NCBI GenBank assembly: GCA_002269645.1
Contig: NIVC01004110.1
Span: 1 to 60,353 of the forward strand
Direction of reading: 5' to 3'
Source: Macrostomum lignano
Taxonomy: Eukaryota
DNA: 60,353 nucleotides
Made by a program: the position numbers and the translations under genes. Under the pieces are notes generated by a model, which was given only the letters and a program-made list of their open reading frames with translations, did not search any database and was not told the origin of the DNA. Positions 1-50,691 of the stretch are shown here, piece by piece; positions within the stretch are counted from its first letter, which is position 1, and each line of letters opens with the position of its first letter.

Positions 1-290
1 TGTGGGATATAGGGTGTGGGATCTATGGGTGTGATCTAGAGGTGTGGGATATAGGGTGTGGAATCTAGGTGTGGGATATAGGGTGTGGGATATAGGGTGT
101 GGATCTAGGGTGTGCATATAGCGTGTGGGATATAGGGTGTGGGATATAGGTGTGTGGGATATAGGGTGTGGATATAGGGTGTGGGATCTAGGGTGTGGAT
201 CTAGGGTCGTGTGGATATAGGGTTTGGGATATACAGTGTGTGCGTGTAGGATGTAAGTTGAGATGTAGGATGTGGGATGTGGGTTGTAGT
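1..290. repeat. G-rich ~14-bp minisatellite (GGGTGTGGGATATA)n
   Basis: Tandem degenerate copies visible from the window start, with repeated GGG tracts. Confidence 0.9.
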
Positions 291-535
291 TGTGGGTATT
301 TTTTATTGCTCCTGTTGTAAAATTGTCGTTCAACTTTTAGTCTACTTGTGAAATGGTGAAAATTAACTTTTTTTAAAGAGGTGTTAACTTGGCAATTAGT
401 CACGACTCAACTTATTCCACAGCAGCTGTCTATGCCCAGGCCGCCATGTCAAAACAGCTACTCTGCATTAAGCATTTAGCGTCAGGTGTCTCGGCAGCCT
501 AGCAAAGCTCCCTTGTCAGATAACTCGTACTGAAG

Positions 536-3500
536 GCTTTCGACCGAGTCCACCTAGCGGCGCAGCATGACCATTGGGCCCGTACCTGCCCGAGGTTGCT
601 GCGGAGCTCGGCTTACGAGAATTCTGCAATCGAGACGGCATTTTTCGGCTTCTGCAATTCGGGCGGCACCGCCGGGGCGGCCATCTCTGCTTGGCAGGCG
701 GCGGCGGGCGGCCGAAGGCGCGGCTGCAGCCCAACTCGCTGGCCGGGCCCGCGGCGGTGCGAGTTCGCGCCCGGACTGCTGACCCGATGTACCGGTACTG
801 TGCCGGCAGGTGCCACTGCCGACAGGTGATCTCTTGATGATGACAAGTTGTGGCGCTGTCTTCTGATTCTAGTTGTGGCGCTGTCTGATTCTAGTTGTGG
901 CGCTGTCTGATTCTAGTTGTGGCGCTGTCTGATCTAGTTGTGGCGCTGTCTGATTCTAGTTGTGGCGCTGTCTCATTCTAGTTGTGGTTCTGTCTGATTC
1001 TAGTTGTGGCGCTGTCTGATTCTAGTTGTGGCGCTGTCTTCTGATTCTAGTTGTGGCGCTGTCTGATTCTAGTTGTGGCGCTGTCTGATTCTAGTTGTGG
1101 CGCATTCAATATATGCCTTTCCCAGTCTATCAACTTATCCGGAGATAAATTCCGGTCCCAAAATTGTTAAAACCCAGGCTTCCGGTCCTCCATTTGACAT
1201 CCGGTTCGAACTGGCCAAGGAGAGCGCCAGCAGAATTTACTGCAGGCTGACTGTGGAGACTCAAGACACAGCGGAGCCGGCCTCAGCTGATGAAGCATCC
1301 GCGTCAACAGCGGAGCTGACGGTGGCGTTCAGCTGTGGGTTTGCCACGCGGACTGCGGCGGGTTCAGCTGGCCGAAGAAGAGGGCGAAGCTTCTGGTGGC
1401 GGCTACGTCCGGCTGAGGATGGCCGGTGAGCGCTTGAACTACTCATTATTCAGTAGTATCGTTGGCTTGGCTTGTAGATTGAGTTCAGTTCGGCTTGTAT
1501 TTTATGATAGCAACTAATAACTAACTGACAGATTTAAGAGGCTCACTCTGAGCAACCTATGACAGATCAATGTAAGTACGCGCCTCAAACAGTGCCCCAA
1601 ACAGTGCCCTAAACAGTGCCCCAAACAGTGCCCCAAACAGTGCCCTAAACAGTGCCCCAAACAGTGCCCTAAACACTGCTCTAAACAGTGCCCTAAACAG
1701 TGCCCCAAACAGTGCCCCAAACAGTGCCCTAAACAGTGCCCCAAACAGTGCCCTAAACACTGCTCTAAACAGTGCCCTAAACAGTGCCCCAAACAGTGCC
1801 CTAAACAGTGCTCAAAACAGTGCCCTAAACACTGCTCTAAACAGTGCCCCAAAACAGTGCCCTAAACACTGCTCTAAACAGTGCCCTAAACAGTGCCCCA
1901 AACAGTGCCCCAAACAGTGCCCTAAACAGTGCCCCAAACAGTGCCCCAAACAGTGCCCTATACAGTGCCCTAAACACTGCCCTAAACAGTGCCCAAACAG
2001 TGCACCAAACAGTGCCCTAAACAGTGCCCTAAACAGTGCCCAAACAGTGCCCCAAACAGTGCCCCAAACAGTGCCCCAAACAGTGCCCTAAACACTGCTC
2101 TAAACAGTGCCCTAAACAGTGCCCCAAACAGTGCCCCAAACAGTGCCCCAAACAGTGCCCCAAACAGTGCCCTAAACACTGCTCTAAACAGTGCCCTAAA
2201 CAGTGCCCCAAACAGTGCCCCAAACAGTGCCCTAAACAGTGCCCCAAACAGTGCCCTAAACAGTGCCCCAAACAGTGCCCCAAACAGTGCCCTAAACAGT
2301 GCCCCAAACAGTGCCCTAAACAGTGCCCCAAACAGTGCCCCAAACAGTGCCCTAAACAGTGCCCCAAACAGTGCCCAAAACAGTGCCCTAAACACTGCTC
2401 TAAACAGTGCCCTAAACAGTGCCCTAAACAGTGCCCCAAACAGTGCCCTAAACAGTGCCCCAAACAGTGCCCTAAACAGTGCCCCAAACACTGCCCTAAA
2501 CAGTGCCCCAAACAGTGCCCCAAACAGTGCCCTAAACAGTGCCCCAAACAGTGCCCAAAACAGTGCCCTAAACACTGCTCTAAACAGTGCCCTAAACAGT
2601 GCCCTAAACAGTGCCCTAAACAGTGCCCTAAACAGTGCCCCAAACAGTGCCCTAAACAGTGCCCCAAACACTGCCCTAAACAGTGCCCCAAACAGTGCCC
2701 CAAACAGTGCCCTAAACAGTGCCCCAAACAGTGCCCAAAACAGTGCCCTAAACACTGGTCTAAACAGTGCCCTAAACAGTGCCCTAAACAGTGCCCCAAA
2801 CAGTGCCCTAAACAGTGCCCCAAACAGTGCCCTAAACAGTGCCCCAAACACTGCCCTAAACAGTGCTCAAAATAGTGCTCCAAAAAGCGCCCCCCTCTCC
2901 TCCTCAACACCTGAGCTCAGACGGCTGCCGGGGCCAGGCCTGCGTTTACCTGTCCGACAGACACGAGTCCGAGAACACCGACCTGCCTGGCGAGGACAGC
3001 CGTCGCGTTGACAATTTGAAGCTGCACTATCCGTCTGAGCATCTGGAGTCTGTGGTCTTCTGCGCTGAGCCTCAGGTCAGAGTGGGGTGCCTGATTGTCT
3101 GAGCTCAGAGCCCCAGTGCCAGGGAGTTCACAGTGTGCGGCTTCGCGAGAGTGAATCCCTCGTTGCCTGCAGAGGGTGAGTAATTAATTATCTGAGGTGA
3201 CCTTCACGCGTGGCCCCCCGCAGGCCCTGGACCGGCTGATTGTCCACGGCGACTCATCGCTGCTGTGCTCAGATCAGACCGTCGGGTGCCGAGTGGCCCT
3301 CATCTACCGGTTCCCGCTGGCTCCGGCCGGCAGCCAGAGCCTGAGCTTCCTGCTCAGCCCGGCCGGCAGCCCCGGCCCCGACTCCCCAGCCCGGATCTCC
3401 CAGCTGATGTCGCAGGCCGCGGCTCTGGCCAGCGACTCGCTGACTCGGCCGGCCGAGTGCGGAGTCGAGTTCGACCACCGCACCGGCTCGCTGATTCGCC

Positions 3501-6500
3501 GAGCCCTCTCCGGCCTGCTGTGGAATCGCCAGCTGTGCGGCCAGCAGCCGCTGACATCGACATCGGCGACGGTGTCGGTGAGGGTGTCGATAGCGCCGTC
3601 TCTGACGCAGCTGGCCAAGACAATTCTGGCCATTGTGCCGGACAAGTGGGCGCGGCCGGAGCCGGCCGGCTGGGAGCACGGGCTGCACGCGATCGCGCTG
3701 TGCCGGGTGAGCGGCCGGCTGGCCTTGGCGGAGCTGCGACACCAGTTCGACAGGATGTCGGCAGGCGGCGAGATTCTCGCTGGCGGTGGCGGCGGGGTCA
3801 TGGAGCCGCCAGTGTGGCCGCTCGCCCTACTGGAGTTTCTGCGGTGAGTCCGTCGGTCCTCGGCAATCTTCACTCAGGTCCTCACCAATTCTCCCTCAGG
3901 ACCTCACCAATTCTCCCTCAGGACCTCACCAATTCTCCCTCAGGACCTCACCAATTCTCACTCAGGACCTCACCAATTCTCACTCAGGTCCTCACCAATC
4001 ACTCAGGTCCTCACCAATCACTCAGGTCCTCACCAATCACTCAGGTCCTCACCAATCACTCAGGTCCTCACCAATCACTCAGGTCCTCACCAATCACTCA
4101 GGTCCTCACCAATCACTCAGGTCCTCACCAATTCTCACTCAGGTCCTCACCAATCACTCAGGTCCTCACCAATCACTCAGGTCCTCACCAATCACTCAGG
4201 TCCTCACCAATCACTCAGGTCCTCACCAATCACTCAGGTCCTCATAAATTCTTCGGATCCTAACCAATCCTCCCCTATGGCTTTGAGTTCCCTATGACGT
4301 CATCCGTCCTCTCGCCATCGGCTTTGCCCGTTTCCCCAGCCACAACAGCGAGCAGGAGGCGGCCAACGCCACATTCTGCGACCTGCTGCGCCACCTGCAC
4401 TGGTGGCTGCTGATGCGCCGAGATGCCGGCCAGCGCAGCACCCTGGACGGCGGAATCCTCGGCCTGCGACACGCCGGCTGGATGGACGCCACCGAGCACG
4501 ACGGCGAGTCCAACGATTCGCTGGTCTGGTCCGGCTTCTTCTGCGCTGTGAGTTGAGGGACACCTGCTCATGTGTGCCTTCTGGTCACCTGTTCGATTCT
4601 TCACCTGTTCGACTCTCCACCTGTTCGACTCTCCACCTGTTCGACTCTCCACCTGTTCGACTCTTCACCTGTTCGACTCTTCACCTGTTCCACTCTCCAC
4701 CTGTTCGACTCTCCACCTGTTCGACTCTCCACCTGTTCGACTCTCCACCTGTTCCACTCTCCAACTGTTTGACTCTCCACCTGTTCGACTCTCCACCTGT
4801 TCGACTCTCCACCTGTTCGACTCTCCACCTGTTCGATTCTCCGCCTGTTCGACTCTCCACCTGTTCGACTCTTCACCTGTTCCACTCTCCACCTGTTCGA
4901 CTCTCCACCTGTTCGACTCTCCACCTGTTCGACTCTCCACCTGTTCGACTCTTCACCTGTTCGACTCTTCACCTGTTCCACTCTCCACCTGTTCGATTCT
5001 CCGCCTGTTCCACTCTCCACCTGTTCGACTCTCCACCTGTTCGACTCTCCACCTGTTCCACTCTCCACCTGTTCGACTCTCCACTTGTTTGACTCTCCAC
5101 CTGTTCGATTCTCCGCCTGTTCGACTCTCCACCTGTTCGACTCTCCACCTGTTCGACTCTCCACCTGTTCCACTCTCCACCTGTTCGACTCTCCACCTGT
5201 TCCACTCTCCACCTGTTCGACTCTCCACCTGTTCGACTCTCCACCTGTTCGACTCTCCACCTGTTCGACTCTCCACCTGTTCGACTCTTCACCTGTTCCA
5301 CTCTCCACCTGTTCGACTCTCCACCTGTTCGATTCTTCGCCTGTTCGACTCTTCACCTGTTCGACTCTCCACCTGTTCCACTCTCCACCTGTTCGACTCT
5401 CCACCTGTTCCACTCTCCACCTGTTCGACTCTCCACCTGTTCGACTCTCCACCTGTTCGACTCTTCACCTGTTTGATTCTTCACCTGTTCCACTCTCCAC
5501 CTGTTCGACTCTCCACCTGTTCGACTCTTCACCTGTTCGACTCTCCACCTGTTCGACTCTCCACCTGTTCGACTCTTCACCTGTTCCACTCTCCACCTGT
5601 TCGACTCTCCACCTGTTCGATTCTCCGCCTGTTCGACTCTCCACCTGTTCGACTCTCCACCTGTTCGACTCTCCACCTGTTCGACTCTCCACCTGTTCGA
5701 CTCTCCACCTGTTCGACTCTCCACCTGTTCCACTCTCCACCTGTTCGACTATCCACCTGTTTGACTCTTCACCTGTTCGACTCTCCACCTGTTCGACTCT
5801 CCACCTGTTCGACTCTTTACCTCTTCACTTCTTCACCTGTTGTCTACTTGTTCACCTGTTTACCTGCTCACCTGGCTGCCAAACTGCCTGATACATCACT
5901 TTCTCACTGGGCGTCCCTCACCGCAGAAAATGGTGCACCTGGCGGCCCTGCTCCGCCGCCAGGAGCTCAAGTCCCTGCTAGATTTGTTTAACGCAGCGAT
6001 GGCTTCGCTGCACAACGAGTCCGCCTTCGTGAACGGCCTCTTCCGGCCCAACCTGCTGTCGGATCGGCAGCCGGCCGGCGAAGCTGCCGATGCCACTGCG
6101 ACGGCGCTGCCAGCTGGCGCCTCGCCTCCCTGCAAGCGCGGCGCCACCTGCTGCTGCGCCTTCGGCCTGGTGCCTCTGCTGGGCTGCGCCATCGTGCCCC
6201 GCGACGGTCTGGCCGCAGACCCGGAGGCGAACACGCTGGTTGACTGGCTGCACTGGCTGGCCAGCGAGGCCTCGGCGTCGGGCAGCTCGGAGACGCCGTG
6301 CCTGTTCGTCCGGGGCGAGGAGTCGCGCGGCCGGATGTTGATCAGCTGGCTGGGGAGGCCGAGTTCCTGCAGACCTGCGAGGTGAGCCTTTGTATGCGGT
6401 TTTATCGCTTCTGATGCCTGCTGTTCCTCGTCTGACATCCTGCTTTATCCTACTGACACCATGCTGTTCCTCGTCTGACATCCTGCTTTATCCTACTGAC

Positions 6501-9212
6501 ACCCTGCTGTTCCTCGTCTGACATCCTGCTTTATCCTACTGACACCATGCTGTTCCTCGTCTGACATCCTGCTTTATCCTACTGACACCCTGCTGTTCCT
6601 CGTCTGACATCCTGCTTTATCCTACTGACACCCTTCTGTTCCTCGTCTGACATCCTGCTTTATCCTACTGACACCCTGCTGTTCCTCGCCTGACATCCTG
6701 CTTTATCCTACTGACACCATGCTGTTCCTCGTCTGACACCCTGCTTTATCCTACTGACACCCTGCTGTTCCTCGTCTGACATCCTGCTTTATCCTACTGA
6801 CACCCTGCTGTTCCTCGTCTGACATCCTGCTTTATCCTACTGACACCCTTCTGTTCCTCGTCTGACATCCTGCTTTATCCTACTGACACCCTTCTGTTCC
6901 TCGTCTGACATCCTGCTTTATCCTACTGACACCATGCTGTTCCTCGTCTGACATCCTGCTTTATCCTACTGACACCATGCTGTTCCTCGTCTGACATCCT
7001 GCTTTATCCTACTGACACCCTGCTGTTCCTCGTCTGACATCCTGCTTTATCCTACTGACACCCTTCTGTTCCTCGTCTGACATCCTGCTTTATCCTACTG
7101 ACACCCTGCTTGATCCTACTGACACCCTGCTTGACTCCCCTGACACCCTGCTTGATCCTCTTGACACCCTGCTTGAACCTGCTGACACCTTGCTTGATCC
7201 TACTGTCACCCAGTTCTATCTTTCTGATACCTAGTTTGTCGATCCTGACACCCAGTTTGTCGATCCTGACACCCAGTTTGTCGATCCTGACACCCATTTT
7301 GTCGATCCTGACACCCAGTTTGTCGATCCTGACACCCAGTTTGTTGATCCTGACACCCAGCTTGTCGAATATCGTTACCTCTCACCTGACGGCTCTCAAT
7401 AGAAAAAATATATTTCTATTCATTTTGAATCTCGGATCTCCAGGTGCTGTTCGACCCGGCGCACTTCCTCTCGCCGCACGGTCTCCGGTGCACATCCCGG
7501 CTGCTCAGCCGGGAGGCCCGGGACTGCGACAACGCCAAGGACGCGCCGTGTCGGCCAGTCGGACGGGTGAGCATCGTCAGCCTGCCGTGGAACTACCTGG
7601 TGCTGGAGGCGCTGAAGTGCTGGGAGGCGGCCTACGGCCAGCAGCTGCAGCTGGACTATCCCACCGGGTCCGGGATGCGGCACTGCCTGAACGACATCAT
7701 TGTGGACATTTCCCGACGCCTGATGAGCATCTTCGACAATTTTGGTGAGCAGCGGCCGTTCGCAAGATTCAGGTATAGGTTTAGATTTAGGTTCAGTTTT
7801 CAGATTTAGGTTCAGTTTTCAGATTTAGGTTTAGTTTTCAGATTTAGGTTCAGTTTTCAGATTTAGGCTCAGTTTTCAGATTTAGGTTCAGTTTTCAGAT
7901 TTAGGTTCAGTTTTCAGATTTAGGCTCAGTTTTCAGATTTAGGTTCAGTTTTCAGATTTAGGCTCAGTTTTCAGATTTAGGTTCAGTTTTCAGATTTAGG
8001 TTCAGTTTTCAGATTTAGGTTCAGTTTTCAGATTTAGGTTCAGTTTTCAGATTTAGGCTCAGTTTTCAGATTTAGGTTCAGTTTTCAGATTTAGGTTCAA
8101 TTTTCAGATTTAGGTTCAGTTTTCAGATTTAGGTTCAGTTTTCAGATTTAGGTTCAGTTTTCAGATTTAGGTTCAGTTTTCAGATTTAGGTTCAGTTTTC
8201 AGATTTAGGTTCAGTTTTCAGATTTAGGCTCAGTTTTCAGATTTAGGCTCAGTTTTCAGATTTAGGTTCAGTTTTCAGATTTAGGTTCAGTTTTCAGATT
8301 TAGGTTCAGTTTTCAGATTTAGGTTCAGTTTTCAGATTTAGGTTCAGTTTTCAGATTTAGGTTCAGTTTTCAGATTTAGGTTCAGTTTTTAGATTTAGGT
8401 TCAGTTTTCAGATTTACGTTCAGTTTTTAGATTCAGATTCAGATTTAGATCTAGGTTTAGGTTTAGCTTTCGAATTAGTTTTTTGATTTAAGTTCAGTTT
8501 TTAGATTTTTAGATCTAGGATCACTTTTTAGATTTAGGTTCAGGTTTCACATTTAGGTTCAGGTTTAGATTTAGTTTCAGGTTAGGATTTAGTTTCAGTT
8601 ATAGATTTTTAGGTTCAGGTTTAGATTTAGGTTCAGGTTAGGATTTAGGTTTAAGTTCAGATTTAGGTTCAGGCAAAGGTTCTTTTTTGGTCAGGTTTAG
8701 ATTTAGGTTTAGGTTCAGGTTTTTCGAGGTCAGGTTGAGATCAACTTCAGGGATAGGTTCTCCCGATTGAACGATAGACGGATATTCACCCTGAGGTTTA
8801 CTTAGAATGAGCGGATGTTCGCTGATTGAGAAGTCGGAGCCAGAGAAGTCGGCAGAATGTGCGCAACTCAGAGCTGCTTGCCTTGATTTGCCCGAAGCCC
8901 CCCAAACTGCGCCACCCTTCAGACGAGGACGCGCTGATGCTCCGCGAATACTACGAAGCTACCAGCGGCCGAGGCGTGGGCGGCCAGCGCACAGGCTGGA
9001 GTGGCGTCATCGCCAACATCGCCGAGAATCTGAGCCGTCAGCCGACTTTGGCGGTGCTCACGAAGCCAGAACTGCCGCGGACAGTCGGGCAGATCCTGCC
9101 GCGCAACTCGGTAGTGCACGGGTTCCGGGAGAGTCTGCGCAGCTCCATCAAGCTGGACGAGTTCACGCCTGAGCTCAGCTTCGACTGGGACAACGATGAA
9201 GATGAGGATTGA
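536..9212 (+). CDS. Divergent YMR196W-like glycoside hydrolase family 63 protein, multi-exon; the 5' start is not resolved
   Basis: Exons approx 536-825, 1126-1425, 2921-3075, 3224-3843, 4288-4547, 5927-6381, 7444-7744, ~8806/8872-9212. Translations match the family motifs in order: DHW-x8-RSSAY, FDIRFELAKE, LIVHG, VPDKWARPEPAGWEHGLH (cf. MPDKWEYPWFAAWDLAFH), EPPVW (cf. NPPVH), WWLLMRRD..DGGILGLRH (cf. WWVNRKD..EGGFLGLDN), FLSPHGLR, NYLVLEAL..DYPTGSG, REYY..GRGVGGQRTGWSG (cf. YEYF..GRGLGASHQTGWTG). AATAAA near 9266. Apparent 1-bp indels near 1340, 4290 and 6353. A possible extra exon segment lies at 3076-3175. Confidence 0.85.
846..1103. repeat. 22-bp intronic minisatellite (GATTCTAGTTGTGGCGCTGTCT)n
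   Basis: About 11 tandem copies in intron 1 of the GH63-like gene. Confidence 0.95.
1586..2880. repeat. 12-bp intronic minisatellite (AAACAGTGCCCY)n
   Basis: About 105 copies. The long CPKQ/ALNS ORFs here are repeat artefacts. Confidence 0.97.
3869..4258. repeat. 19/22-bp intronic minisatellite (CTCAGGTCCTCACCAATCA)n
   Basis: 22-bp variants at the 5' end and 19-bp units afterwards. Confidence 0.95.
4590..5840. repeat. 16-bp intronic minisatellite (GACTCTCCACCTGTTC)n
   Basis: About 77 copies, pyrimidine-rich on the sense strand. Confidence 0.97.
6412..7365. repeat. 43-bp minisatellite grading into 21-bp units
   Basis: Period 43 (for example 6421 and 6464) up to ~7100, then 21-bp TGACACCC.. 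units. Confidence 0.95.
7770..8720. repeat. 19-bp intronic minisatellite (GATTTAGGTTCAGTTTTCA)n, degenerate after ~8420
   Basis: Tandem copies in the last intron of the GH63-like gene. Confidence 0.95.
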
Positions 9213-9412
9213 GAGGCTGGTACTGGGACTTGCACTGTTTTTTTGAGTAGACAAGTTTTTAAAATAATAAAATGAGATTTAATTTTTTCGCTTAGAAACC
9301 AAGCATTTGTTTGCATGAGGAAATTATTGCTCAGCTTTCAGTGTAAGAGCCACTTTTTTATCTGTTCGGGTCTCCTTGGTGTGCTGTTGGGGGCATTTTG
9401 GTGTGCTGTTGG

Positions 9413-10336
9413 ATCCCAGTATACCCACGCTCAGTATACTGCGGTCAACTCCAGTGTTTTCCACAATGAAGTTCTCGCCATCAGCTCTTGCACTGCAGAG
9501 CTTCTCGCCACTGGCGTAACCGGTAAGAGCATCATTTTCCATTCGGACAGCCAAGCTACCTTGCACGCCATCAGTGGCTGCAGCGCAGCACCAACTCTGC
9601 TACAGTCCTCGACTGTATCAAACTTCTTAATATGTTGGGCTTCACCAACAAAATTAAACTCAAGTGGGTTCTGGGGCATGGTGCAATCCCTTGCAAAAGC
9701 TGGCGCCTCCGGCTCCTCTCTCGGGCCTGAATCCGTTGTCCCGATTCCCGGCTGTGTCATCAACTCGCGCATCAAGGCGTGGATCAGGACCCAGCATCGC
9801 TCAGCCTGGGTGAACTGCACTACCTGCAGGCAATCCAGAGGCGCTGTCCCTCAGCCTTCTCACCAGCTCTGGAAGCTCCTCCTGCGCCTCTCGCGAAGAG
9901 ACATCTGGGCTGCCACCATGACCCTCTCAGGTCACGGTTGCTTCTCCAGGCACCAGTACCTGCAGGGCAACGCCACCAACGCCATCTGCAGTTTTTGTAA
10001 CTCAGGTGACGAAACCGCTGAACATTTTGTCAGCATCTGTCCCGCCTTTACGCGAGCCAGACTCACTTACCTCGGGCCACACACATCTATTATTGAAGCG
10101 TGCAAACCCGAAAACTTTAATCAGCTCATGCGCTACCTCCGGGCCATCCACAGGACTGAACTCTCCTTTCCAGAGAGCACCATAGCTGCTGGCGACACTG
10201 GGAGACCTCCCTGGGCGGCGCCAACCCTTCGTCCATAGCGACGCGTCTGCCGTTCAGGGATTGGCGGAATGGGCGTCTGCGCCTTCCCGCTGTGTCCCCT
10301 CCGGGACAGCCCTGCAGCTAAGTCAAGTAAGTCAAG
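9413..10336 (+). mobile_element. 5'-truncated non-LTR retrotransposon with RNase H and C-terminal CCHC region (I/R1/Loa group)
   Basis: RNase H motif IIFHSDSQATLHAI, alternative-frame KWVLGH, and SGHGCF..CSFCNSGDETAEHFVSICPAF. Short tail CTAAGTCAAGTAAGTCAAG. Flanked by TGCTGTTGG at 9404-9412 and 10337-10345 (TSD). Confidence 0.9.
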
Positions 10337-10510
10337 TGCTGTTGGGGGCACTTTGGTGTGCTGTTGGGGGCACTTTGGTGTGCTGTTGGGCGCACTTTGG
10401 TGTGCTGCTGGGGGCACTTTGGTGTGCTGTTGGGGGCACTTTGGTGTGCTGTTGGGCGCACTTTGGTGTGCTGTTGGGCGCACTTTGGTGTGCTGCTGGG
10501 GGCACTGTTG
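10337..10510. repeat. 21-bp minisatellite (GTGCTGTTGGGGGCACTTTGG)n, continuing at 9377-9412 on the other side of the LINE
   Basis: The same unit is present on both sides of the LINE. Confidence 0.92.
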
Positions 10511-11223
10511 GCGAGAAAAGTTATACACGCCTCCCTTGCAAACTAGTAGGGATTCCGGTTCATTACAAAATATTCAAGCCTGCTCTCAAACTGCATGAGA
10601 CAGAAATTAACATACGCTTGGGGGTTTATTCTATTTGATTTTTAGGTGGGCTGGGGCACCGCAGGTGCAGCGCAGGTATGTAATTAGGGCGACCTCATGC
10701 AAAAATACGCGGGCACTTCCAACACTGGTATTCTCCCTCCGATTGCCATTAGCTGTCCTAATTGGTTGATAGGGGCTTTCCCAGCTGGCTTTCCAAACTG
10801 CTGGGTAAACTTTACCTGTGCTAATTTCTTTGCCCAGCTGGAGGGCCGCAGTAAAATAAGCAGTCGTTGAGTCGGCGAGGAACACCTGGAGTGGGACGTC
10901 ATGAACTCTGCCCCGAATTCTTTTCTCGGTCAAATTCCTGGGATTTCTTTGCCAAGAAATTTTCCCGCTAGGCGAAATCAAAACTGCTTTCTGAAATCAC
11001 AAAAATTTAATTTATTCGACTCAGAAACCAACTTTTGGGGCCCTCGGAGTCCGCACTGAAGCTAAATTATTTTTCACTTCAATAACGAAAACACGAAATC
11101 TGCTTCAGGGCAAAGTGCAAAACAAATTCGACTCAATGTACGTTTGAGAATGTTCACGAACTCCATCAGCCTAAGCTCTCCTCTCAGACTCGAAGTGACA
11201 GCTGCGAGTGTCCGCCAGCACCA

Positions 11224-12414
11224 TCAGCCAATATTTTCCTGCAGGACTCGCAGCCGCATCTGCGGGTCGATGTACACCTCGTCCAGCTGCCGGGAGAGCG
11301 TGTTGTGCTCACACATCCACTCGCCAGGACTGCGTCGATAGCGCAGCCTGCGGGCCGCTAGAGCCGACATCCGGTAGAACGACACGGCCTGGAAGCAGCT
11401 CTCCACCTTCACCGGCGGCAGGCTGCGCGGCGCGTTCCAAAGCGACTTCTCGTAGTCGACCACCGGGTACTTGGTGTCCTCGCCGAAGCGCTTGTTCAGG
11501 TGGAAGCTCAGCGTGCACGGGTCGTAGAGGTGGCTGTCCTGAGTAGTGTGGGCGCACAGCTGCTGCAGCTTGGGCTTGGCCGCAAAGTAGTAAAGTCCCT
11601 GGGCGATGCTGTCCAGATCCCAGTCCTGCCAGGTGATGTCCGGGTCCACGATCAGCAGGAGCGATGCCCGGTCGGCCAGGTGCTCGTAGATGTAGTCCAG
11701 GTACAGGTTGCGGAGGGCGGACATGATCAGGCCGCGCTCGACCTCCTCGGAGAAGGTGCGGTTTATTTGGACACCTGGCAGGTGCTGGCGGCCGCTGCCG
11801 TAGCGGACGTTGATTTCGCACGGCAGCGCAGAGTTGACCCGGCCGCAGCCCAGCAGCCGCACATTCGGGTCGGTCAGCGTCATGTTGTACAGGAAGCTGC
11901 GAGTCGAGTCTGTCGAGTCGTTCTCGACCAGCACCAGCCAGGAATCGTTGAACAGAGCTCTGAGGCGCTGGACATTGTGCATGGTGCTCGGCAGGCCGTC
12001 CATGCCGTTGCGCACGGTGGCTGCCACCACCGCCGACTGGCTGTGGAGCCACGCCCTGCCGGCCGCTGCTCGGCGCGAGCGGCTCCTCTCGGCTTCGGAG
12101 AGCCGCATGAGCGGCAGCAGCAGGCCGGGCCTGTCGAAGCGGTACAGCGACTCGCGCATGCCGCGGACCAGCCGGTTGTAGTTCTCCTCGAAGGTGCCGT
12201 CACGCATTCGCTCTGACAGTCCGGAGATTTTATTATCAAAACCGGGGCGCTTCAGCTGCAGGGCGGTCAGCAGTAGGGTCACGGCGACGGCCACCGTGGT
12301 GATGCCTATTAGGACATTTCGCTCAGTCAACCAGAGAACGCGGCGATTTCCGAGTTGTCTGGAGCAGAAGAGGCTCCCGGAAGTGTTGATCAGACGAGGT
12401 CCAGTAATTAGCAT
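11224..12414 (-). CDS. Intronless type II membrane GT-A glycosyltransferase, CAP59/GT69 mannosyltransferase-like, 396 aa
   Basis: Uninterrupted ORF. One N-terminal TM segment (NVLIGITTVAVAVTLLLTALQL). Motifs LVLVENDSTDST, MSALRNLYLD, DxD motif IVDPDI, LYDPCTL, PVKVESCFQAVSFY and CEHNTL. Minus-strand AATAAA near 11011-11016. The family label is tentative. Confidence 0.8.
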   Translation of the reverse strand: MLITGPRLINTSGSLFCSRQLGNRRVLWLTERNVLIGITTVAVAVTLLLTALQLKRPGFDNKISGLSERMRDGTFEENYNRLVRGMRESLYRFDRPGLLLPLMRLSEAERSRSRRAAAGRAWLHSQSAVVAATVRNGMDGLPSTMHNVQRLRALFNDSWLVLVENDSTDSTRSFLYNMTLTDPNVRLLGCGRVNSALPCEINVRYGSGRQHLPGVQINRTFSEEVERGLIMSALRNLYLDYIYEHLADRASLLLIVDPDITWQDWDLDSIAQGLYYFAAKPKLQQLCAHTTQDSHLYDPCTLSFHLNKRFGEDTKYPVVDYEKSLWNAPRSLPPVKVESCFQAVSFYRMSALAARRLRYRRSPGEWMCEHNTLSRQLDEVYIDPQMRLRVLQENIG

Positions 12415-12535
12415 GGTTCAAATATCTTAAAAAAATATTATCAATGCTATTTTAGGTTCCATATGCTTCTGCACTGGCATGTCTTGAAGATATAGAAGGC
12501 GAACTTTGGTTTGCAAGCCTTCTGATTTGACCGCC

Positions 12536-12629
12536 CGTCTGATTGGGGAGAAAATCTCAGAAACCAAGCACGAGTGCGTACGTACTGTACCGTGGGCACA
12601 GTGTGCACACACAGCCGTCTGATTGGTTG
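12536..12629 (-). promoter_or_regulatory. Two identical CCAATCAGACGG boxes (CCAAT/NF-Y-like) upstream of the glycosyltransferase
   Basis: The 12-mer CCGTCTGATTGG occurs twice on + (near 12536 and 12616), about 120-215 bp upstream of the ATG. Confidence 0.45.
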
Positions 12630-12912
12630 CAGAGTGGGGTGGGTGTCGCCAACTAAACAAATTCACGCACTTATAATATGAGTTTGGCTGCGCACTTGAT
12701 ATTGCCAATGTACACTCGCATCAGCTATTGCAGTCAACTATGAAGTTAAGAATAAATACCTTCAAACGGAAATGCATCAGTTCTATCAATGCCATGATAT
12801 ACAGCCTTTTAAAGTACAGGATACACGCTAGTAATGTTTGAAGAAGCACTATCCATGAGATCAAGATTTCAAGCATAATACACCCCATTGCCTTGACCCA
12901 GTGCATCTTAGC

Positions 12913-13290
12913 TTCCTTGAGCCATGGCATCTCAGTGACTGTCCCCTGAGCCATGGCATCTGAGTGTCTGTCCCTTGAGCCATGGCATCTCAGTGGCTGT
13001 CCCTTGAGCCATGGCATCCCAATGACTGTCCCCTGAGCCATGGCATCTGAGTGTCTGTCCCTTGAGCCATGGCATCTCAGTGGCTGTCCCTTGAGCCATG
13101 GCATCTCAGTGACTGTCCCCTGAGCCATGGCATCTGAGTGTCTGTCCCTTGAGCCATGGCATCTCAGTGGCTGTCCCTTGAGCCATGGCATCCCAATGAC
13201 TGTCCCTTGAGCCATGGCATCTCAGTGACGACTGTCCCTTGAGCCATGGCATCTCAATGACGACTGCCCCTTGAGCCATGGCATCTCTTT
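12913..13290. repeat. 29-bp minisatellite (CCCTTGAGCCATGGCATCTCAGTGACTGT)n
   Basis: About 12 copies with a recurring variant pattern; each unit contains the palindrome GCCATGGC. Confidence 0.95.
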
Positions 13291-13881
13291 ATACTTGGCA
13301 TCTCAGCAATTTCCCTGTGATCGATGGAATTTCAGCAACTCTCTCCATGAGCCATGGCCTAACTCCAACACTATAACGCTAACCTGCAATACTGAAGCGC
13401 AATAAGGCTTTTTCAAATTTCAAAATATTCAAAACTGCGTGTACAAAATCGCTGGTGCTCCATCCGGAGACCAAAAATCTTCGGTTTCCCGGGTTTCGCT
13501 GAAACCAATAACTTTGAATAAATATCGTCTTTTTGGTTATTGAAGCAGAATATTCTCGCGAAATGTTACTGTGGACAGCGTATATTTGCAAGTACAAACA
13601 TATTCAGCGATATTATACTGGCAGCTCAGTCGAGCAAGAACACCAATGATCAAATCCATTTCTTCAAGTACCAAATCTACAAAAATATTTAGTTTTAAGG
13701 TAGCTACTCAAATTTTCGACAGTTAAAACCATCTAAGGACAAAAAATTGAATTTAGTATGAATCCAACACGAAAGATAGTACAGTTACACGTACTCTTTC
13801 GGCCAGTCTGTTTCAACAAATTTGATATGCAATTTCGTCATTCCACTTGTAAAACAGCGTTTAAAGTTCTATTTTCGATTG

Positions 13882-14215
13882 CAATGCCAGCGGCAGTGCA
13901 ATTTAGCCACCGGCAGTGCAATTTAGCCAGCGGCATTGCAATTTAGCCACCGGCAGTGCAATTTAGCCACCGGCAGTGCAATTTAGCCACCGGCAGTGCA
14001 ATTTAGCCACCGGCAGTGCAATTTAGCCACCGGCATTGCATATTTAGCCACCGGCAGTGCAATTTAGCCACCGGCAGTGCAATTTAGCCACCGGCAGTGC
14101 AATTTAGCCACCGGCATTGCATATTTAGCCACCGGCAGTGCAATTTAGCCACCGGCAGTGCAATTTAGCCACCGGCAGTGCAATTTAGCCACCGGCATTG
14201 CATATTTAGCCACCG
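13882..14215. repeat. 20-bp minisatellite (GCAATTTAGCCACCGGCAGT)n
   Basis: About 16 copies, some 21-bp variants. Confidence 0.95.
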
Positions 14216-14328
14216 GCTTCAGGATTGTTCCGAGTATAAGCTTTAGAAAATATAGGCTTCAAAAAGTGTCTCTATAGTTTTCAGTGGGTTTCATTACAGA
14301 ATTTGCCCGCCAGTCGCACCTGTCCGCA

Positions 14329-15267
14329 TCAGCTGCTGGCCGCGCCGCCACCGCCGGCGTCGCCTTTTTCGTAGAGAAAGTCGCCCGGCTCGAAGCCGCC
14401 GTAGGCCAGCTCGGCCGCCGTGGGCTGCCGGCACCGCCACATGCGCTCACGGAAGCGGTCTCTGGGCGGCTTCACCAGGCTCAGGATGTCCCGGCCGCGC
14501 TCCCGGTACCGCGGCAGCGGCCCGAAGTACGAATAGAAAGGCGAATTGGTGGCGGCCGACGATACGAAAGCCGCGTCGGTGGTGGCGGCGACCAGTTTGT
14601 CGACTTCCAGATCGTCGTGCGCGTCTCCGAAAGTGCGGCGTCGGCGTTTCTGCCTGAGCCGCAGGATCCGCGTGAACTGGCCGGATTTGCGCGCGGACAT
14701 GGCGGCCAGGTGGCTGCGGCGGTACTTGGCCGGGTCGTCCGCGGCCACCGGCTGGAGCTGCGGCACCGGCGCGCCGTCGGTTTTCTCCGTTGTCGTCTGC
14801 GGCGTCATCGGCGGCGGCGGGGTCGGCGGCGGCGGTAGCGGCGAGGACAGCTGGCGCTGAACCGGCACCGCGGCCCCGGTTGGAACCGGCCTGGCGATGG
14901 TCTCGGGTTCGATTCTTGTCAGCGAACGCCGCGGCGGCGGCTGCTCTCGCGGCGCCGGCTTCAGCGGCCTTGTGGAGATCGATGCCTCCACGGCGATGGA
15001 GGTGACGCGGAGCGAGCGCTGCAGGCGGAATGCCAGACTGTCCGCGATGGGCAACTTCGTCGGCTGTAGAGTCGCCGCCGTCCGGGACGGCTGCTGCCCG
15101 GCTGGTTGGCTGGTCGACGGCATCCTCCGCCTCTGCGGGAACTGCTGGTAGGTGCGGCAGTCGATGCAGTTGATCTGCCTGGTGTGACGGCAGTTCTGAA
15201 AGTCGTCGCCGCCGCCGCTTCTGGAAGCAGAAGTGCCGACTCGCTGCTGCTGCTGCGGCAGAGACAT
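14329..15267 (-). CDS. Uncharacterised basic, largely disordered single-exon protein (~313 aa)
   Basis: GC-rich ORF starting MSLPQQQQ at 15267, with a CxH-x5-CxxC-like motif, a Pro-rich middle and Arg-rich segments. The C-terminus may extend to ~14300 if the A5 run near 14365 is mis-called. No family recognised. Confidence 0.6.
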   Translation of the reverse strand: MSLPQQQQRVGTSASRSGGGDDFQNCRHTRQINCIDCRTYQQFPQRRRMPSTSQPAGQQPSRTAATLQPTKLPIADSLAFRLQRSLRVTSIAVEASISTRPLKPAPREQPPPRRSLTRIEPETIARPVPTGAAVPVQRQLSSPLPPPPTPPPPMTPQTTTEKTDGAPVPQLQPVAADDPAKYRRSHLAAMSARKSGQFTRILRLRQKRRRRTFGDAHDDLEVDKLVAATTDAAFVSSAATNSPFYSYFGPLPRYRERGRDILSLVKPPRDRFRERMWRCRQPTAAELAYGGFEPGDFLYEKGDAGGGGAASS

Positions 15268-15927
15268 GAGCTCTCTGTTTCTGCGTCCCTTGTCAGTGCG
15301 ACCGTCTCTGAGCCCGATTTTGCTGGCGGGACAGCGGAAAGGCAAGGCAATCAACAAACTATATTGGGATGTGTCGGTTGAGGAAGGGTTTGTGATGCCA
15401 TTTGACGGCGATGGTTGAGAATTTCAATTTGGGGAATTTCCGCTGGGATGACGCAAATTGCTGGATTGATGGGAATGCGCATGGGGAGAGGGGATGGGGC
15501 TTTGGGAGCTTTAGGACGATGCGGGCGGGCACGCGGGTGAGCTGCTGCATGCAGGGTGGAGACGAGGTCCGGGTACTGCTGCACAGGCTTAAAGCGCGAG
15601 GCCAAGGGGAAACAATGACTATGAATGGGACTAATAAAAAACTTTATCAGCCAGAAAGCATTTTCACCAAGCTACAAAGCGGACTTGTGCATCCCCTCAT
15701 TCATCTACATGTAGCCATCTCCCATATCGGGCCGCCGGAGGCTGGCAATCTTCATCCGCCCATAAAAACTGGAAAAAATTGCTACATGGTTTTGAATGGA
15801 ATTAAAATTTTCTGCTCAAACTGATTGTTGTAACAAAAATATTAGCTGGCTTTTGCACAGCTTGTGTACCTCGGGGGATATGCTAAATGTTCGCCCGCTT
15901 TTGGGTGATCAGAAATTTTAAAACCGG

Positions 15928-16191
15928 GACAGTGATTGGTGACAGTGATTGGTGACAGTGATTAGTGACAGTGATTGGTGACAGTGATTGGTGACAGTGA
16001 TTGGTGACAGTGATTGGTGACAGTGATTGGTGACAGTGATTAGTGACAGTGATTGGTGACAGTGATTGGTGACAGTGATTGGTGACAGTGATTGGTGACA
16101 GTGATTGGTGACAGTGATTGGTGACAGTGATTGGTGACAGTGATTGGTGACAGTGATTGGTGACAGTGATTGGTGACAGTGATTGGTGACA
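15928..16191. repeat. 13-bp minisatellite (GGTGACAGTGATT)n
   Basis: About 20 near-perfect copies. Confidence 0.97.
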
Positions 16192-16459
16192 TTTGGTTCG
16201 CATGTTACGAGCTAAAATGGTTCAGGCTTGACTAGCCAATATTATTGTATTGAAATAATACCAGTATATAAGCTCAAATACCGCATGTACTGATGTACTG
16301 CTAATGCCTCTAGTTCCCGTTTCAACTGACTGTATTTTCGATAATTGCCCCATTGTAAGTGCGCGAACTGTTTTCATGTAATAATGTAACTAATATCGAT
16401 TGTTTACATTATTCTTTATCAGCACTAGCAAGCTGCGATTTTGTACACTCGCACTGAGT

Positions 16460-16917
<458 letters not shown>

Positions 16918-16925
16918 ACCACCAG

Positions 16926-17454
16926 TGACAACTACGGAGCGTTACTTCCTGGGATTCACCGACATGCTGAAGGAGGCCAGTAGGAGTCGCAGCGGCTGGC
17001 TGAGCACTGCTGATGGAGAGCTTCCGGTCAACAGCCTCATTGACTCAATTTGGTACCCAAACAGACCGGATAACCGAAAACAATCTGACGACTGCCTGCA
17101 ACTGTACAGCGACCATGGAACTACGCCGCTAACAGTGCTGGACAGTTACTGCGACAGCCGTTACGGCCTTATCTGCGAACCCGGGCCCCAGTCCTACAGC
17201 AGCAACAGCACCAGCGTCTTTGCAAAATCGCCCTTCCCACCCAGCCTCCCGAGACCGTTCCGTTCTACTGCCGCGGCGAGGAGCTGACTGTCTGGAACCG
17301 TTTTCACTGCGTGTCCCTGTGCCCCGCCAACCCGGTGTGCAAGTCCGTCCTGTTCAACACGGCCACCCGCGCCTGCCGCCAGGTTGTGCACGGAGACACC
17401 GCCGTGGAGGCCGCCATCGAAACGGACGCCAACTGGCAGAAGTTTTCGCGTTGA
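16926..17454 (+). CDS. Terminal exon encoding the C-terminal half of a C-type lectin domain plus a PAN/Apple domain
   Basis: After a CAG acceptor at 16923-16925: YFLGFTD..WYPNRPDN..DDCLQL..DSYC..GLICE (CTLD). After a 1-bp shift at the C run 17248-17250: FYCRGEELTVWNRFHCVSLCPANPVCKSVLFNTATRAC (PAN). Upstream exons not identified. Confidence 0.75.
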
Positions 17455-17944
17455 GTTGACGCGAGCGCCATCGGCCGAGATCGCATCATCAGGAAACTGA
17501 AAACAACTGACTTTACTTTCCAGTAGTCGGCTTCTGTAATTTTCACAAACCCCGTCAATCTCCTCAACTGAAATTGAAATTAAAGATTTTGTTATTCTCA
17601 ATTATGACTTATTTTTTGTTATATTTTCCTTCTATCGCTATTGAACAATTATTCAAATATTCTTTCACTGAAGCTGTGCGAGCTGAACTGTTTAAAAACC
17701 GCAATTCCCCCTCAAGAATCTGTACCGCCAGTTCTAACTGATTTTCAATCTCAATGAATATTTTAAGAACCTATTCAATGTTTGACATTTCCGGAGGACC
17801 CTCAAACAGCAGAAAACTTTAAAAAAATTGACGAATGTGGAAGTAGACGCACAAAAACTGTCAAGAGGATTTGAGAAAGCAATCATTTCGCATTGTCGTT
17901 GCCAAGTACATAATTCAAGCAACCATCTGCAGTAAGTCTCGGCG

Positions 17945-18302
17945 CGGCATCCAGGATGGTGATTCCCGGCGGATCCATGATGGTGAGTCCCGGTGCATCC
18001 ATGATGGTGAGTCCCGGTGCATCCATGATGGTGAGTCCCGGTGCATCCATGATGGTGAGTCCCGGTGCGGCATCCATGATGGTGAGTCCCGGTGCATCCA
18101 TGATGGTGAGTCCCGGTGCGGCATCCATGATGGTGAGTCCCGGTGCATCCATGATGGTGAGTCCCGGCGCGGCATCCATGATGGTGATTCCCGGCGAATC
18201 CATGATGGTGAGTCCCGGTGCATCCATGATAGTGAGTCCCGGTGCATCCATGATAGTGAGTCCCGGTGCATTCATGATGGTGAGTCCCGGTGCGGCATCC
18301 AT
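17945..18302. repeat. 21/24-bp minisatellite (GATGGTGAGTCCCGGTGCATCCAT-type)
   Basis: About 16 copies. Confidence 0.95.
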
Positions 18303-23953: not shown

Positions 23954-24572
23954 TATATTGTATTATTGGCTTTATATTTTTTGCCTTTTTTGTAAGTGCG
24001 ACACTTACATTTATTAATAAGTTAGTTTATTAAGTTAGTATAGACATATATTAAATAGATATTATATTTAATCTAATTTAACCATTTCTATTATATATAC
24101 TATATTTTAATTTTTTTTAATAATTTGTTTTTAGGATTAGGAAAGAAAGTTATCAAGACCCTAGACTCCATTATAACTCACATGATCTCATTGCAATTTG
24201 TACTTTAATATATCTTATATTATCAATTGATTATCACTATCAATAGTGAAATTATGTTTAAGTTATAACTATAACATTATAGCCTATTCAAAATTCAAAC
24301 ACTTTCAGTTTTCTTACTTCTATAAAAAGCTTCAATTAAAATTCTAATTAGCTCTAATAGTTTAGTATGAGATACAATTTTTTACTAAGGTTATAGCAGT
24401 CAAGTGTAAGCATATAGCTGTTTAGGTCTTGCGCCTCTTGCGCCCACCTGCTCATCATGCTGCATCTGTGTGCCACCAACCCTGGAGATTAGGGGTGGGG
24501 GTTGCCCACCTAGCCTGAGCTATATGGGGGTTGGGGTTGATTGTCTAATGCATTGGCCTATTTAACCTGATT

Positions 24573-50642: not shown

Positions 50643-50691
<49 letters not shown>

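Follow-up and report, generated by a model that had tools for sequence, protein, structure and literature searches.

Glycoside hydrolases of family GH63 with solved structures include MhGgH and Tt8MGH (PDB: 5ohc, 2z07), YgjK from E. coli (3w7s) and the glucosidases I Cwh41p, CtGluI and MOGS (4j5t, 7t66 and 5mhf). The roles of D182, E419, D43, Y375 and W376 are known from structures and mutants of MhGgH (PMC6608630). Asp182 is the general acid and the variant D182A is inactive; D43A is likewise inactive and binds no substrate, and Y375 and W376 bind the sugar in subsite −1 (PMC6608630). Asp43 anchors the −1 sugar and E419 is the general base. The corresponding residues of YgjK are D501, the first Asp of the motif 'ESGRDD', as acid, D324 as anchor and E727 ('QENY') as base.

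The YMR196W/MGH1-like branch of GH63 (PF22422 and PF03200; e.g. P0019, the 'uncharacterized protein YMR196W-like' of the crinoid Anneissia japonica, and bacterial 'glucosidase' proteins) is strongly conserved, with about 50% identity from bacteria to echinoderms and mutual identities of ~46–52% among canonical members from bacteria to animals, yet is without a known substrate; the literature that mentions YMR196W assigns it no function. The earlier note regarded the branch as mainly bacterial and fungal, but canonical members also occur in echinoderms, a hemichordate and an acanthocephalan. Outside this family, glycosidase-derived pseudoenzymes include the GH18 chitinase-like lectins, the GH13-like heavy chains rBAT and 4F2hc and the GH1-like domains of Klotho. 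As in the gene Mlig023767 of Macrostomum lignano described here, the GH fold was kept after loss of a catalytic carboxylate, together with selection and tissue-specific expression, although these proteins belong to other GH clans and folds.

Contig NIVC01004110.1 of the M. lignano assembly Mlig_3_7, analysed over its whole length of 60,353 bp (the window), carries the gene copy BOX15_Mlig023767g5, with eight exons between bases 567 and 9212 of the forward strand. The earlier note had delimited a gene at 536–9212. The eight-exon gene is present, but its coding sequence in g5 starts at the ATG at 567, and 12 frameshifting indels of one base each, recognised by comparison with the overlapping contig, had been missed: nine in exon 1, two in exon 2 and one in exon 6. 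The exon encoding GLRH starts at 4340 and not, as proposed, at 4288, since the acceptor at 4338–4339 is alone in staying in frame with exon 4 and agreeing with the annotated protein. The overlapping contig NIVC01003995.1 (L002) carries the copy g4 with an intact open reading frame of 847 amino acids in eight exons; the seven introns of this copy all follow the GT–AG rule. The features of the window copy are as follows.

567–825, forward strand: exon 1, start codon at 567–569; placed by alignment to L001 and L002, the exon model of the intact copy reproducing P0062 exactly.
569, 575, 615, 618, 641, 692, 751, 755 and 777, forward strand: the nine single-base indels of exon 1 relative to the intact copy, from the contig alignment.
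1178–1425, forward strand: exon 2, with two single-base deletions at 1326 and 1356.
2921–3075, forward strand: exon 3, frame intact.
3224–3843, forward strand: exon 4, holding PDKWARPEPAGWEHGLH; W-E replaces W-D, with GWEHGLH at 3668–3688.
3224–3843, forward strand: further motif within exon 4, ILAGGGG-GVMEPPV in place of PAYEW.FGDVNPPV.
4340–4547, forward strand: exon 5, holding GGILGLRHAGWMD; GLRH at 4461–4472, with Arg (CGA) at the position of the general-acid Asp and His at that of the Asn.
5927–6381, forward strand: exon 6; at 6351 a G run is one base short, which shifts the frame in the window contig.
7444–7744, forward strand: exon 7, with FLSPHGLR, VGRVS----IVS at 7558–7581 and PTGSG at 7660–7674.
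8923–9212, forward strand: exon 8, with REYY at 8943–8954 (general-base Glu retained), GVGG-QRTGWSG at 8991–9005 and the stop codon.
846–8672, no strand: satellite arrays that dominate six of the seven introns, each intron with its own array (periods of 22, 12, 19, 16, 43/21 and 19 nt).

The short intron 3 (3076–3223) is the exception, being free of satellite arrays, and exon 8 ends in a lineage-specific acidic C-terminal tail of ~60 amino acids.

Mlig023767 is an animal, intron-bearing member of the YMR196W/MGH1-like branch of GH63. HMMER yielded 56 non-Macrostomum matches (E 3e-25 to 8e-5, 75–94% query coverage), all with PF22422 and all but two also with PF03200, while an exhaustive search yielded 256 matches at E ≤ 1e-3, all weak save the M. 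lignano copies. A full-length alignment bore out the earlier observation that the motifs are collinear with those of family members over the whole protein. The common architecture consists of an N-terminal beta domain starting with WGPYL and a C-terminal (alpha/alpha)6 barrel, and the base Glu, PTGSG, FLSPHG(I/L)R and GW are shared as well. Whereas the canonical members keep GLDN, WD, NWRGP, AYEW and SHQTGW, none of these five motifs survives in Mlig023767, which also shows several deletions in its N-terminal domain and is only 23–27% identical to any canonical member. It also lies below both Pfam cutoffs: PF03200 scored 16.9 bits (gathering cutoff 22.4; 47.2 for a canonical animal member), and PF22422 had no match in P0062 at E ≤ 0.01, compared to scores of 93.7 for P0019 and 24.2 for the paralogue P0067, itself below the cutoff of 27. 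Among 214 family-conserved columns, Mlig023767 kept 80 and the paralogue 122, as opposed to 186–212 in other eukaryotic members, four animals included.

This paralogue, Mlig024102/Mlig021567 of M. lignano (P0067, P0213–P0215), is the nearest relative among 1.84 billion representatives. Both genes share the derived motifs HL.WWL..RRDA, DGGI.G, LP.NYL.LEA and GWS. Unlike Mlig023767, the paralogue retains the acid Asp (as GVDY), the W-D motif and most of GGNTNW; its base Glu is also present.

Both domains of the GH63 fold are retained in the predicted structure, in which an N-terminal beta domain is followed by an (alpha/alpha)6 barrel. In the AF2 model (pTM 0.70, mean pLDDT 60.9), beta strands at residues 4–267 precede at least 12 helices; the active-site loops 465–487 and 677–693 have a pLDDT below 50, so that the pocket geometry is not to be inferred from this model. 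Foldseek against the PDB placed GH63 glucosidase I and YgjK on top (E 1e-11 to 1e-9), matched over most of the chain, with 943 alignment columns and a TMq of 0.43 for the first match; across the solved GH63 enzymes E ranged from 1e-11 to 1e-4. The base Glu motif and the helix-5 segment 'WW..RD' are common to these enzymes and Mlig023767, which differs in having only ~10–13% identity to them, Arg for D182/D501, Glu for D43/D324 and a deletion of YW(RGP).

The residue assignments came from a comparison of profiles. When the window protein itself was compared with the PDB by phmmer, no match was obtained, and a search with a 72-column sub-profile gave a chance match only. The family profile did match GH63 structures, with reported alignments that ended outside the acid motif, and the alignment of the family with YgjK as a single sequence, made with hhalign, likewise ended before this motif; the same comparison in greedy mode misplaced GLDN inside the A'-insertion of YgjK and was discarded. 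The decisive profile was that of the MGH/GgH-type GH63 enzymes, built from fragments retrieved with segments of TTHA0978. Aligned to it with hhalign (Prob 96.8%, E 3e-10), the family placed GILGLRHAGWMD of P0062 on WESGMDNSPAWD, and because of this placement Arg473 (CGA, 4467–4469) occupies the position of the general-acid Asp (MhGgH D182, YgjK D501). The earlier proposal of a dead enzyme had been conditional on GLDN carrying the catalytic Asp, which this alignment confirmed; it located no catalytic Asp elsewhere in Mlig023767. The motif GLRH is encoded by GGC CTG CGA CAC at 4461–4472 and is present in three contigs as well as in independent ML2-based predictions, so the reading GLRH for GLDN holds. 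The other replacements and retentions reported earlier (WE for W-D in WEHGLH, the Glu of EYY, GWSG) were likewise found at or near the positions given for them.

Further components of the active site were lost together with the acid. Glu374, in the W-E pair encoded at 3671–3676, aligns with the Asp of the WD motif, i.e. MhGgH Asp43 or YgjK D324, the −1 sugar anchor. The NWRG of GGNSNWRGPVW is deleted (VGRVS----IVS) and with it the equivalents of MhGgH Y375/W376, the aromatic pair that contacts the −1 sugar by stacking and hydrogen bonds. The segment 'PAYEW', the Asn of NPPV and the His of SHQTGW, which is deleted, are gone as well. In contrast, the general base is kept: E760 in REYY lines up with a Glu that is invariant in the family as part of an EYF motif, itself aligned with 'yENY' of Cwh41p; this Glu is the equivalent of MhGgH E419 and YgjK E727, and TGWSG (8991–9005) is also retained. 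Because the acid Asp is replaced by Arg, the anchor Asp by Glu and the NW(RG) pair is deleted, the product of Mlig023767 is predicted to be probably devoid of inverting alpha-glycosidase activity, a prediction drawn from homology to distant GH63 enzymes, the protein being ~12% identical to the solved structures. The chi-lectins preserved their sugar-binding subsites, whereas in Mlig023767 subsite −1 is dismantled too. Canonical glycan binding by Mlig023767 is doubtful, judged from its residues, because those of subsite −1 are also gone. Of the earlier suggestion of a catalytically dead, glycan-binding or scaffold protein, the loss of the acid and the retention of the gene thus stand, and the glycan binding is doubtful.

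A glycosidase, or another carbohydrate-active enzyme, that is still active through a relocated acid or with another mechanism or substrate is an unlikely alternative. In its favour, the base Glu has been preserved together with PTGSG, GW and the general fold, and the gene is under purifying selection. The loop after GLRH also contains an acidic cluster, MDATEHDGESND, and one of the residues D479, E482, D484 and E486 could in principle substitute as acid. However, an Arg takes the place of the proton donor, and besides the acid also the −1 anchor Asp (now Glu), the NW pair, the 'PAYEW' segment, the Asn of NPPV and the His of SHQTGW were lost; a precedent for acid relocation in GH63 was not found in the literature consulted. 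A phosphorylase-like mechanism in the style of GH65 or GH94 was also rejected. Phosphorylases of these families keep the acid and have no base, the opposite of the residue pattern in Mlig023767, in which the acid is lost and the base kept.

The reading that we favour, with a probability of about 0.72, is that Mlig023767 is a retained, testis-expressed, non-catalytic pseudo-glycosidase whose copy in the window is broken only by assembly errors. We consider it very unlikely that the gene is instead a transcribed, decaying pseudogene on its way to loss, with real frameshifts in the window copy. The 12 indels that break the frame (exons 1, 2 and 6) and the extreme divergence from the family could be read in this way, as could the truncated GenBank product of g5 (523 aa, P0063), which results from the reading frame broken by these indels. 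The pattern of differences argues otherwise. Over an overlap of ~17 kb, the window and NIVC01003995.1 differ by 2–3 substitutions and ~50 one-base indels, whose density is highest towards the end of the contig. Within window bases 1–15583 the match is 99.7%, with 2 substitutions and 43 gaps, and in bases 1–9500 there are 2 substitutions against 40 one-base indels, 21 of which lie within the first 522 bases of the contig. The indels fall in homopolymers, in introns and exons alike, as is the signature of PacBio consensus errors; at 6351 in exon 6, for example, the window has GGGG and the overlapping contig GGGGG. The assembly was built with PacBio reads and Canu, polished with Pilon and contains 180 Mb of redundancy (PMC5730564). 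Because only 2 substitutions accompany ~40 one-base indels piled up at the contig end, the frameshifts most probably represent consensus errors of an unmerged contig overlap, as far as the indel pattern can tell, and a real pseudogenisation of the window copy was rejected on the same grounds.

The other copies agree with this interpretation. The frame of g4 has no stop in 847 codons, whereas the remaining sense frames contain 14–26 and shuffled sequences 19 on average, and its GC3 is 0.84. Copy g3, 97.7% identical, also has an open frame; of 1896 coding sites compared between the DNA of g3 and g4, one differs. At the exon-6 site, the ML2-based predictions read through as ISWLGEAEF. The GenBank models g5 (truncated) and g3 (partial) are to be seen as artefacts, caused by the ends of contigs and by overlaps left unmerged in Mlig_3_7, and frameshifts in this assembly should not be called pseudogenes before a check of the reads. 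P0001 represents a more diverged copy.

Among the published data on expression and selection, the latter also speak against decay. Gene models of M. lignano were derived from RNA-seq (PMC5730564). Copy g3 is listed as testes-specific with a baseMean of 65.8 (PMC12896417, Table S10), a value that covers near-identical copies, which are not separable in the expression data. The ortholog group OG0001118_2_inclade1_ortho4, present in 31 Macrostomum species and annotated as testis region, has an omega of 0.257 with ~65% of its sites in a class with an omega of 0.175, and the paralogue Mlig024102, from the same orthogroup OG0001118_2, is also assigned to the testis region, with an omega of 0.145 (PMC8662610; all dN/dS values are published codeml results). 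The idea of an untranscribed or neutrally evolving locus does not agree with these values. The omega of 0.257 reflects constraint on the gene and does not date the dead state of the catalytic site. The name 'Mlig023767' was not found in literature text, and no mention of the gene occurs in the supplements of PMC5816591 and PMC7336406.

Despite these losses, Mlig023767 is a spliced gene with expression in the testis region, its orthologues occur in 31 Macrostomum species, and purifying selection acts on it. The protein would most likely be a cytosolic, non-catalytic component of the male germ line; the cytosolic placement follows from the affiliation with a cytosolic family and from the N-terminus, where no signal peptide is evident by eye. 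Its putative non-catalytic role may be that of a scaffold, or the protein may bind a ligand that differs from the ancestral sugar. A more specific version is possible and put forward tentatively: a neo-functionalised, male-germline-specific GH63 scaffold in which a remodelled pocket, with its new Arg-His pair next to the retained Glu, and the acidic tail would accommodate a novel ligand or partner during spermatogenesis or in the function of sperm, the long branch then reflecting change driven by sexual selection after duplication and not mere relaxation. If true, this would be the first GH63 pseudoenzyme described and a functional handle on the YMR196W family in animals.

The gene probably originated by duplication of a gene whose catalytically equipped paralogue, Mlig024102, persists in the same genome. 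Macrostomum provides a natural experiment with two testis-expressed paralogues, one with the catalytic machinery and one with it dismantled, both kept across a genus for which ~100 transcriptomes and tools for RNAi and transgenesis are available. Their comparison could reveal the role of the family in animals and the re-use of a glycosidase barrel after loss of catalysis. An origin of Mlig023767 as a bacterial contaminant or by recent horizontal transfer, suggested by the mostly bacterial best matches outside Macrostomum and by an acidobacterial protein as EggNOG seed, can practically be dismissed in view of its seven spliceosomal GT-AG introns, the canonical members in the three animal groups named above and the animal neighbours: the window also contains Nsp1/Nup62-like and GPR180/TMEM145-like genes, and on the overlapping contig an ion channel gene lies upstream. 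Shared introns argue against such an origin as well: three are common to Mlig023767 and Mlig024102 in both alignment column and phase, and one intron of Mlig024102 is in turn common to the gene of the crinoid Anneissia.

The window (60,353 bp) spans one whole contig of M. lignano assembly Mlig_3_7 (GCA_002269645.1). A provisional exon translation was 75-100% identical to M. lignano proteins, with BOX15_Mlig023767g5 (P0063, the copy in the window) among the clustered matches. The gene model of Mlig023767 rests on translation in three frames, on inspection of splice sites and on the full-length annotated product of a sister copy, with which it was compared:

567-825, + strand, exon 1
1178-1425, + strand, exon 2
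2921-3075, + strand, exon 3
3224-3843, + strand, exon 4
4340-4547, + strand, exon 5, with the GLRH motif
5927-6381, + strand, exon 6 (455 nt)
7444-7744, + strand, exon 7
8923-9212, + strand, exon 8

The start of exon 5, placed at 4288 in an earlier note, moves to 4340, the sole acceptor in frame with exon 4, which gives the annotated junction ...LLEFLR/HNSEQ.... All seven introns are GT-AG, and in six of them tandem-repeat arrays dominate, a different one in each (window 846-8672; periods of 22, 12, 19, 16, 43/21 and 19 nt; at most 108 copies). Between these satellites the exons stand as short GC-rich islands. The paralogous copy g3 (locus L001) has intron arrays of the same kind but of differing lengths.

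The reading frame of the window copy is broken, a point overlooked at first reading: it changes at a GGGG run in exon 6 (position 6351) and eleven times across exons 1 and 2, and the GenBank product of g5 is therefore truncated to 523 aa. Window positions 1-17000 overlap positions 9432-26426 of locus L002, the 3' end of contig NIVC01003995.1, by about 17 kb. Over 15.6 kb the two sequences are 99.7% identical (2 substitutions, 43 gaps). The first 9.5 kb holds 2 substitutions versus 40 one-base indels, which sit in exonic and intronic homopolymers, 21 of them within the contig's first 522 bases. Across the whole overlap the window has roughly 50 one-base homopolymer indels clustered at the contig end, with substitution content alike. 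Mlig_3_7 is a Canu assembly of PacBio reads with Pilon polishing, and its authors report duplicated blocks totalling 180 Mb (PMC5730564). Because indels so outnumber substitutions and pile up at the contig end, the frameshifts appear to be consensus errors near the end of a redundant contig that was left unmerged; true mutation is unlikely in view of this pattern and of the intact frame of copy g4 in the overlapping contig. The product of g4 (P0062, PAA49024.1) runs uninterrupted through 847 codons in the same eight exons, and independent predictions from the ML2 assembly read straight through the exon 6 site (...ISWLGEAEF...). P0062 was therefore taken as the product of the locus. Copy g3, at the other end of NIVC01003995.1, is 97.7% identical to g4 overall, introns included, differs at one of 1896 coding sites, and is annotated as partial solely owing to the contig end. 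Mlig_3_7 gene models at such contig ends, as with the truncated g5 and partial g3, are unreliable. The window contig is a redundant overlap of its neighbour NIVC01003995.1 that was left unmerged, or a haplotig of it; g3 and g4 lie in inverted orientation through a genuine inverted duplication or through a palindrome made by the assembly.

Outside Macrostomum, 56 proteins match the protein of this locus (E 3e-25 to 8e-5, 75-94% of the query), so that the proposed homology is real rather than a chance resemblance. All 56 carry PF22422 (MGH1-like GH) and nearly all PF03200 (GH63); some, from Anneissia (a crinoid) and Amphiura (a brittle star), are named YMR196W-like. P0062 itself scores 16.9 bits against Pfam GH63, below the curated cutoff of 22.4, and does not match the PF22422 model, while the canonical Anneissia protein exceeds both cutoffs. 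An AlphaFold2 model of P0062, built on a 26-sequence alignment, has modest confidence (mean pLDDT 60.9, pTM 0.70) and places a beta domain at the N-terminus, ahead of a helical barrel. In a Foldseek search against the PDB, its top matches were Chaetomium and yeast glucosidase I followed by E. coli YgjK (E 1e-11 to 1e-9), the best of them aligned along the greater part of the chain (943 alignment columns, TMq 0.43); the Mycolicibacterium hassiacum glucosylglycerate hydrolase (MhGgH) and trehalases came further down. Assignment of the fold to GH63 is sound. The fine geometry of the modelled pocket is not, because pLDDT is below 50 in both active-site loops (465-487 and 677-693).

In MhGgH, the acid is Asp182, the base Glu419 and the 'substrate placeholder' Asp43; the variants D43A, D182A and E419A are each inactive, D43A without substrate binding, and contacts to the -1 sugar come from Gly180, Tyr375 and Trp376 (PMC6608630). 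The general acid of YgjK is Asp501 (PMC7263609); with the 23-residue signal-peptide offset applied, D501 is the first Asp of SWESGRDD, D324 the Asp of WPWD and E727 the Glu of QENY. Since single-sequence comparisons with solved GH63 enzymes stopped short of the acid motif, an MGH/GgH-type profile was made by aligning sequences retrieved with segments of Thermus TTHA0978, and compared profile to profile. In this alignment (hhalign, Prob 96.8%, E 3e-10), GILGLRHAGWMD of P0062 falls on WESGMDNSPAWD, and PAGWEHGLH on QWLWDSAFI. On this evidence Arg473 sits at the general-acid position, the GLDN Asp as the earlier note had supposed, and Glu374 at the Asp43-type anchor. The flanks of the acid site, GG(F/I)LGL-[DN/RH], are unambiguous in the family alignment, where the base Glu (E760, REYY) is invariant. 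The four motif readings of that note hold in the window: GLRH (GGC CTG CGA CAC, 4461-4472), the W-E form of the substrate motif (GWEHGLH, 3668-3688), and the retained REYY (8943-8954) and TGWSG (8991-9005). Canonical GGNSNWRGPVW has become VGRVS----IVS in P0062, and the equivalents of Tyr375 and Trp376 are thus deleted; PAYEW.FGDVNPPV reads LAGGGG-GVMEPPV, and SHQTGW reads G-QRTGW. Asp (GAY) to Arg (CGA) takes three nucleotide changes, and every M. lignano copy, even the more diverged P0001, has the same Arg, which therefore is not explained by sequencing error or by a very recent change. The product of Mlig023767 probably lacks inverting alpha-glycosidase activity; an enzyme with a relocated acid is the less likely alternative.

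A second alternative, a real decaying pseudogene, is opposed by the intact frame of g4 and by selection across the genus. That frame has no stops in 847 codons, versus 14-26 in the other sense frames and a mean of 19 in composition-matched shuffles, and its GC3 is 0.84 against a GC2 of 0.51. GenBank models of M. lignano stem from an RNA-seq-guided transcriptome (PMC5730564). BOX15_Mlig023767g3, tagged 'Testes-specific' on the basis of Arbore et al.'s positional RNA-seq, lies in a four-copy cluster on the large-chromosome subgenome and has a baseMean of 65.8, a value in which near-identical copies are inseparable; it is mildly higher in hexaploid worms (log2FC 0.93, padj 0.018) (Zadesenets et al. 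2026, PMC12896417 Table S10). Mlig023767.g1 and Mlig024102.g3, from the second paralogue, form two ortholog sets of one orthogroup, each assigned to 'Testis region' (Brand et al. 2021, PMC8662610 Table S1). For Mlig023767.g1 (ortho4, 31 Macrostomum species) the single-ratio omega is 0.257 (N 1502, S 544, tree dN 4.6, dS 17.8); in the branch-site fit, a class of omega 0.175 takes in about 65% of the sites, and positive selection does not reach significance (p 0.021, q 0.40). For Mlig024102.g3 (ortho3, 10 species) the single-ratio omega is 0.145 (PMC8662610). Mlig023767 is thus transcribed, conserved across the genus and under purifying selection, the omega speaking for the gene as a whole rather than for the age of the dead-site changes. 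This selection is weaker than on the catalytically equipped sister Mlig024102. Reproduction-related Macrostomum genes evolve faster than ubiquitously expressed ones (PMC8662610), which fits the long branch of Mlig023767.

The evidence best supports a pseudo-glycosidase, whose GH63 barrel would be retained for a non-catalytic role in male germ-line cells. That the product is a retained functional protein is very likely, and we put the probability that it is such a protein and also lacks the activity at about 0.72. The dead-protein proposal thus stands in outline, including its scaffold option. Glycan binding in the canonical form, also proposed, is not favoured, because the residues that hold the -1 sugar in GH63 enzymes of known structure are altered or missing; it seems more likely that the protein acts as a scaffold or binds some other ligand, which may be anionic and sit at the newly formed Arg-His site.

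Canonical members share about 46-52% mutual identity across bacteria, a protist and animals, versus 23-27% between P0062 and every one of them. At 214 columns, each at least 90% conserved among 23 other members, P0062 keeps 80, its second M. lignano paralogue P0067 keeps 122, and other eukaryotic members, including four animals, keep 186-212. When 1.84 billion representatives were scanned exhaustively with HMMER, no close relative turned up outside M. lignano; the best other match (E 2e-18) was the second M. lignano gene family, Mlig024102/Mlig021567 (P0067, 974-999 aa). Unlike Mlig023767, P0067 retains the acid Asp (GVDY), the W-D motif and most of GGNTNW; both keep the base Glu, and they have derived motifs in common. 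By these motifs P0067 is catalytically equipped and may be active. With exons mapped on the genomic loci, three introns match in alignment column and phase between Mlig023767 and the paralogue, and one paralogue intron is common to the Anneissia gene. These shared introns indicate an old animal gene duplicated in the flatworm lineage, and they rule out bacterial contamination or recent horizontal transfer. Besides the crinoid and brittle star, a hemichordate and an acanthocephalan have canonical members too, and the subfamily, described in the earlier note as known mainly from bacteria and fungi, is not restricted to them. P0067 (locus L004, NIVC01000251.1) is itself very divergent and under both Pfam cutoffs; it reads NWRGP as NWYGG and HQTGW as HKGGW, carries about 60 aa of inserted low-complexity sequence, and one of its introns is GC-AG.

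Other features of the window are:

9315-10238, + strand, 307-aa ORF directly downstream of the GH63-like gene
11224-12414, - strand, 396-aa ORF
25799-27178, + strand, ORF with an Nsp1_C domain (nucleoporin Nsp1/Nup62-like, E 2e-13)
27137-49155, segmental repeat of about three copies (pairs 96-99.9% identical)
33977-35017 and 47411-48586, - strand, GPR180/TMEM145-like exons (both E 1e-28)
50203-53334, (AGAC)n microsatellite of 3.1 kb (about 830 units)

The 307-aa ORF has no Pfam match; its Cys/His pattern near the C-terminus resembles, by eye, a retroelement remnant, and the ML2 gene prediction P0002 joins part of it to the GH63-like protein. The 396-aa ORF matches CAP59_mtransfer (Cryptococcal mannosyltransferase 1 family) weakly (23.6 bits, cutoff 28.8) and is possibly a glycosyltransferase-like gene adjoining the GH63-like one. 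A coding-looking 51-nt tandem repeat (25864-26469) precedes the Nsp1_C domain and probably encodes FG-type repeats. Each copy of the segmental repeat carries a GPR180/TMEM145-like exon, the third probably near 38.6-39.4 kb, and 1.4-2.2 kb of a G-rich 16-nt satellite (GTTGTCAGGGTGTGAG), which causes the strong GC skew of the region. On both strands the (AGAC)n array reads as open frames longer than 1000 codons, and it produces an AT skew of 0.9.
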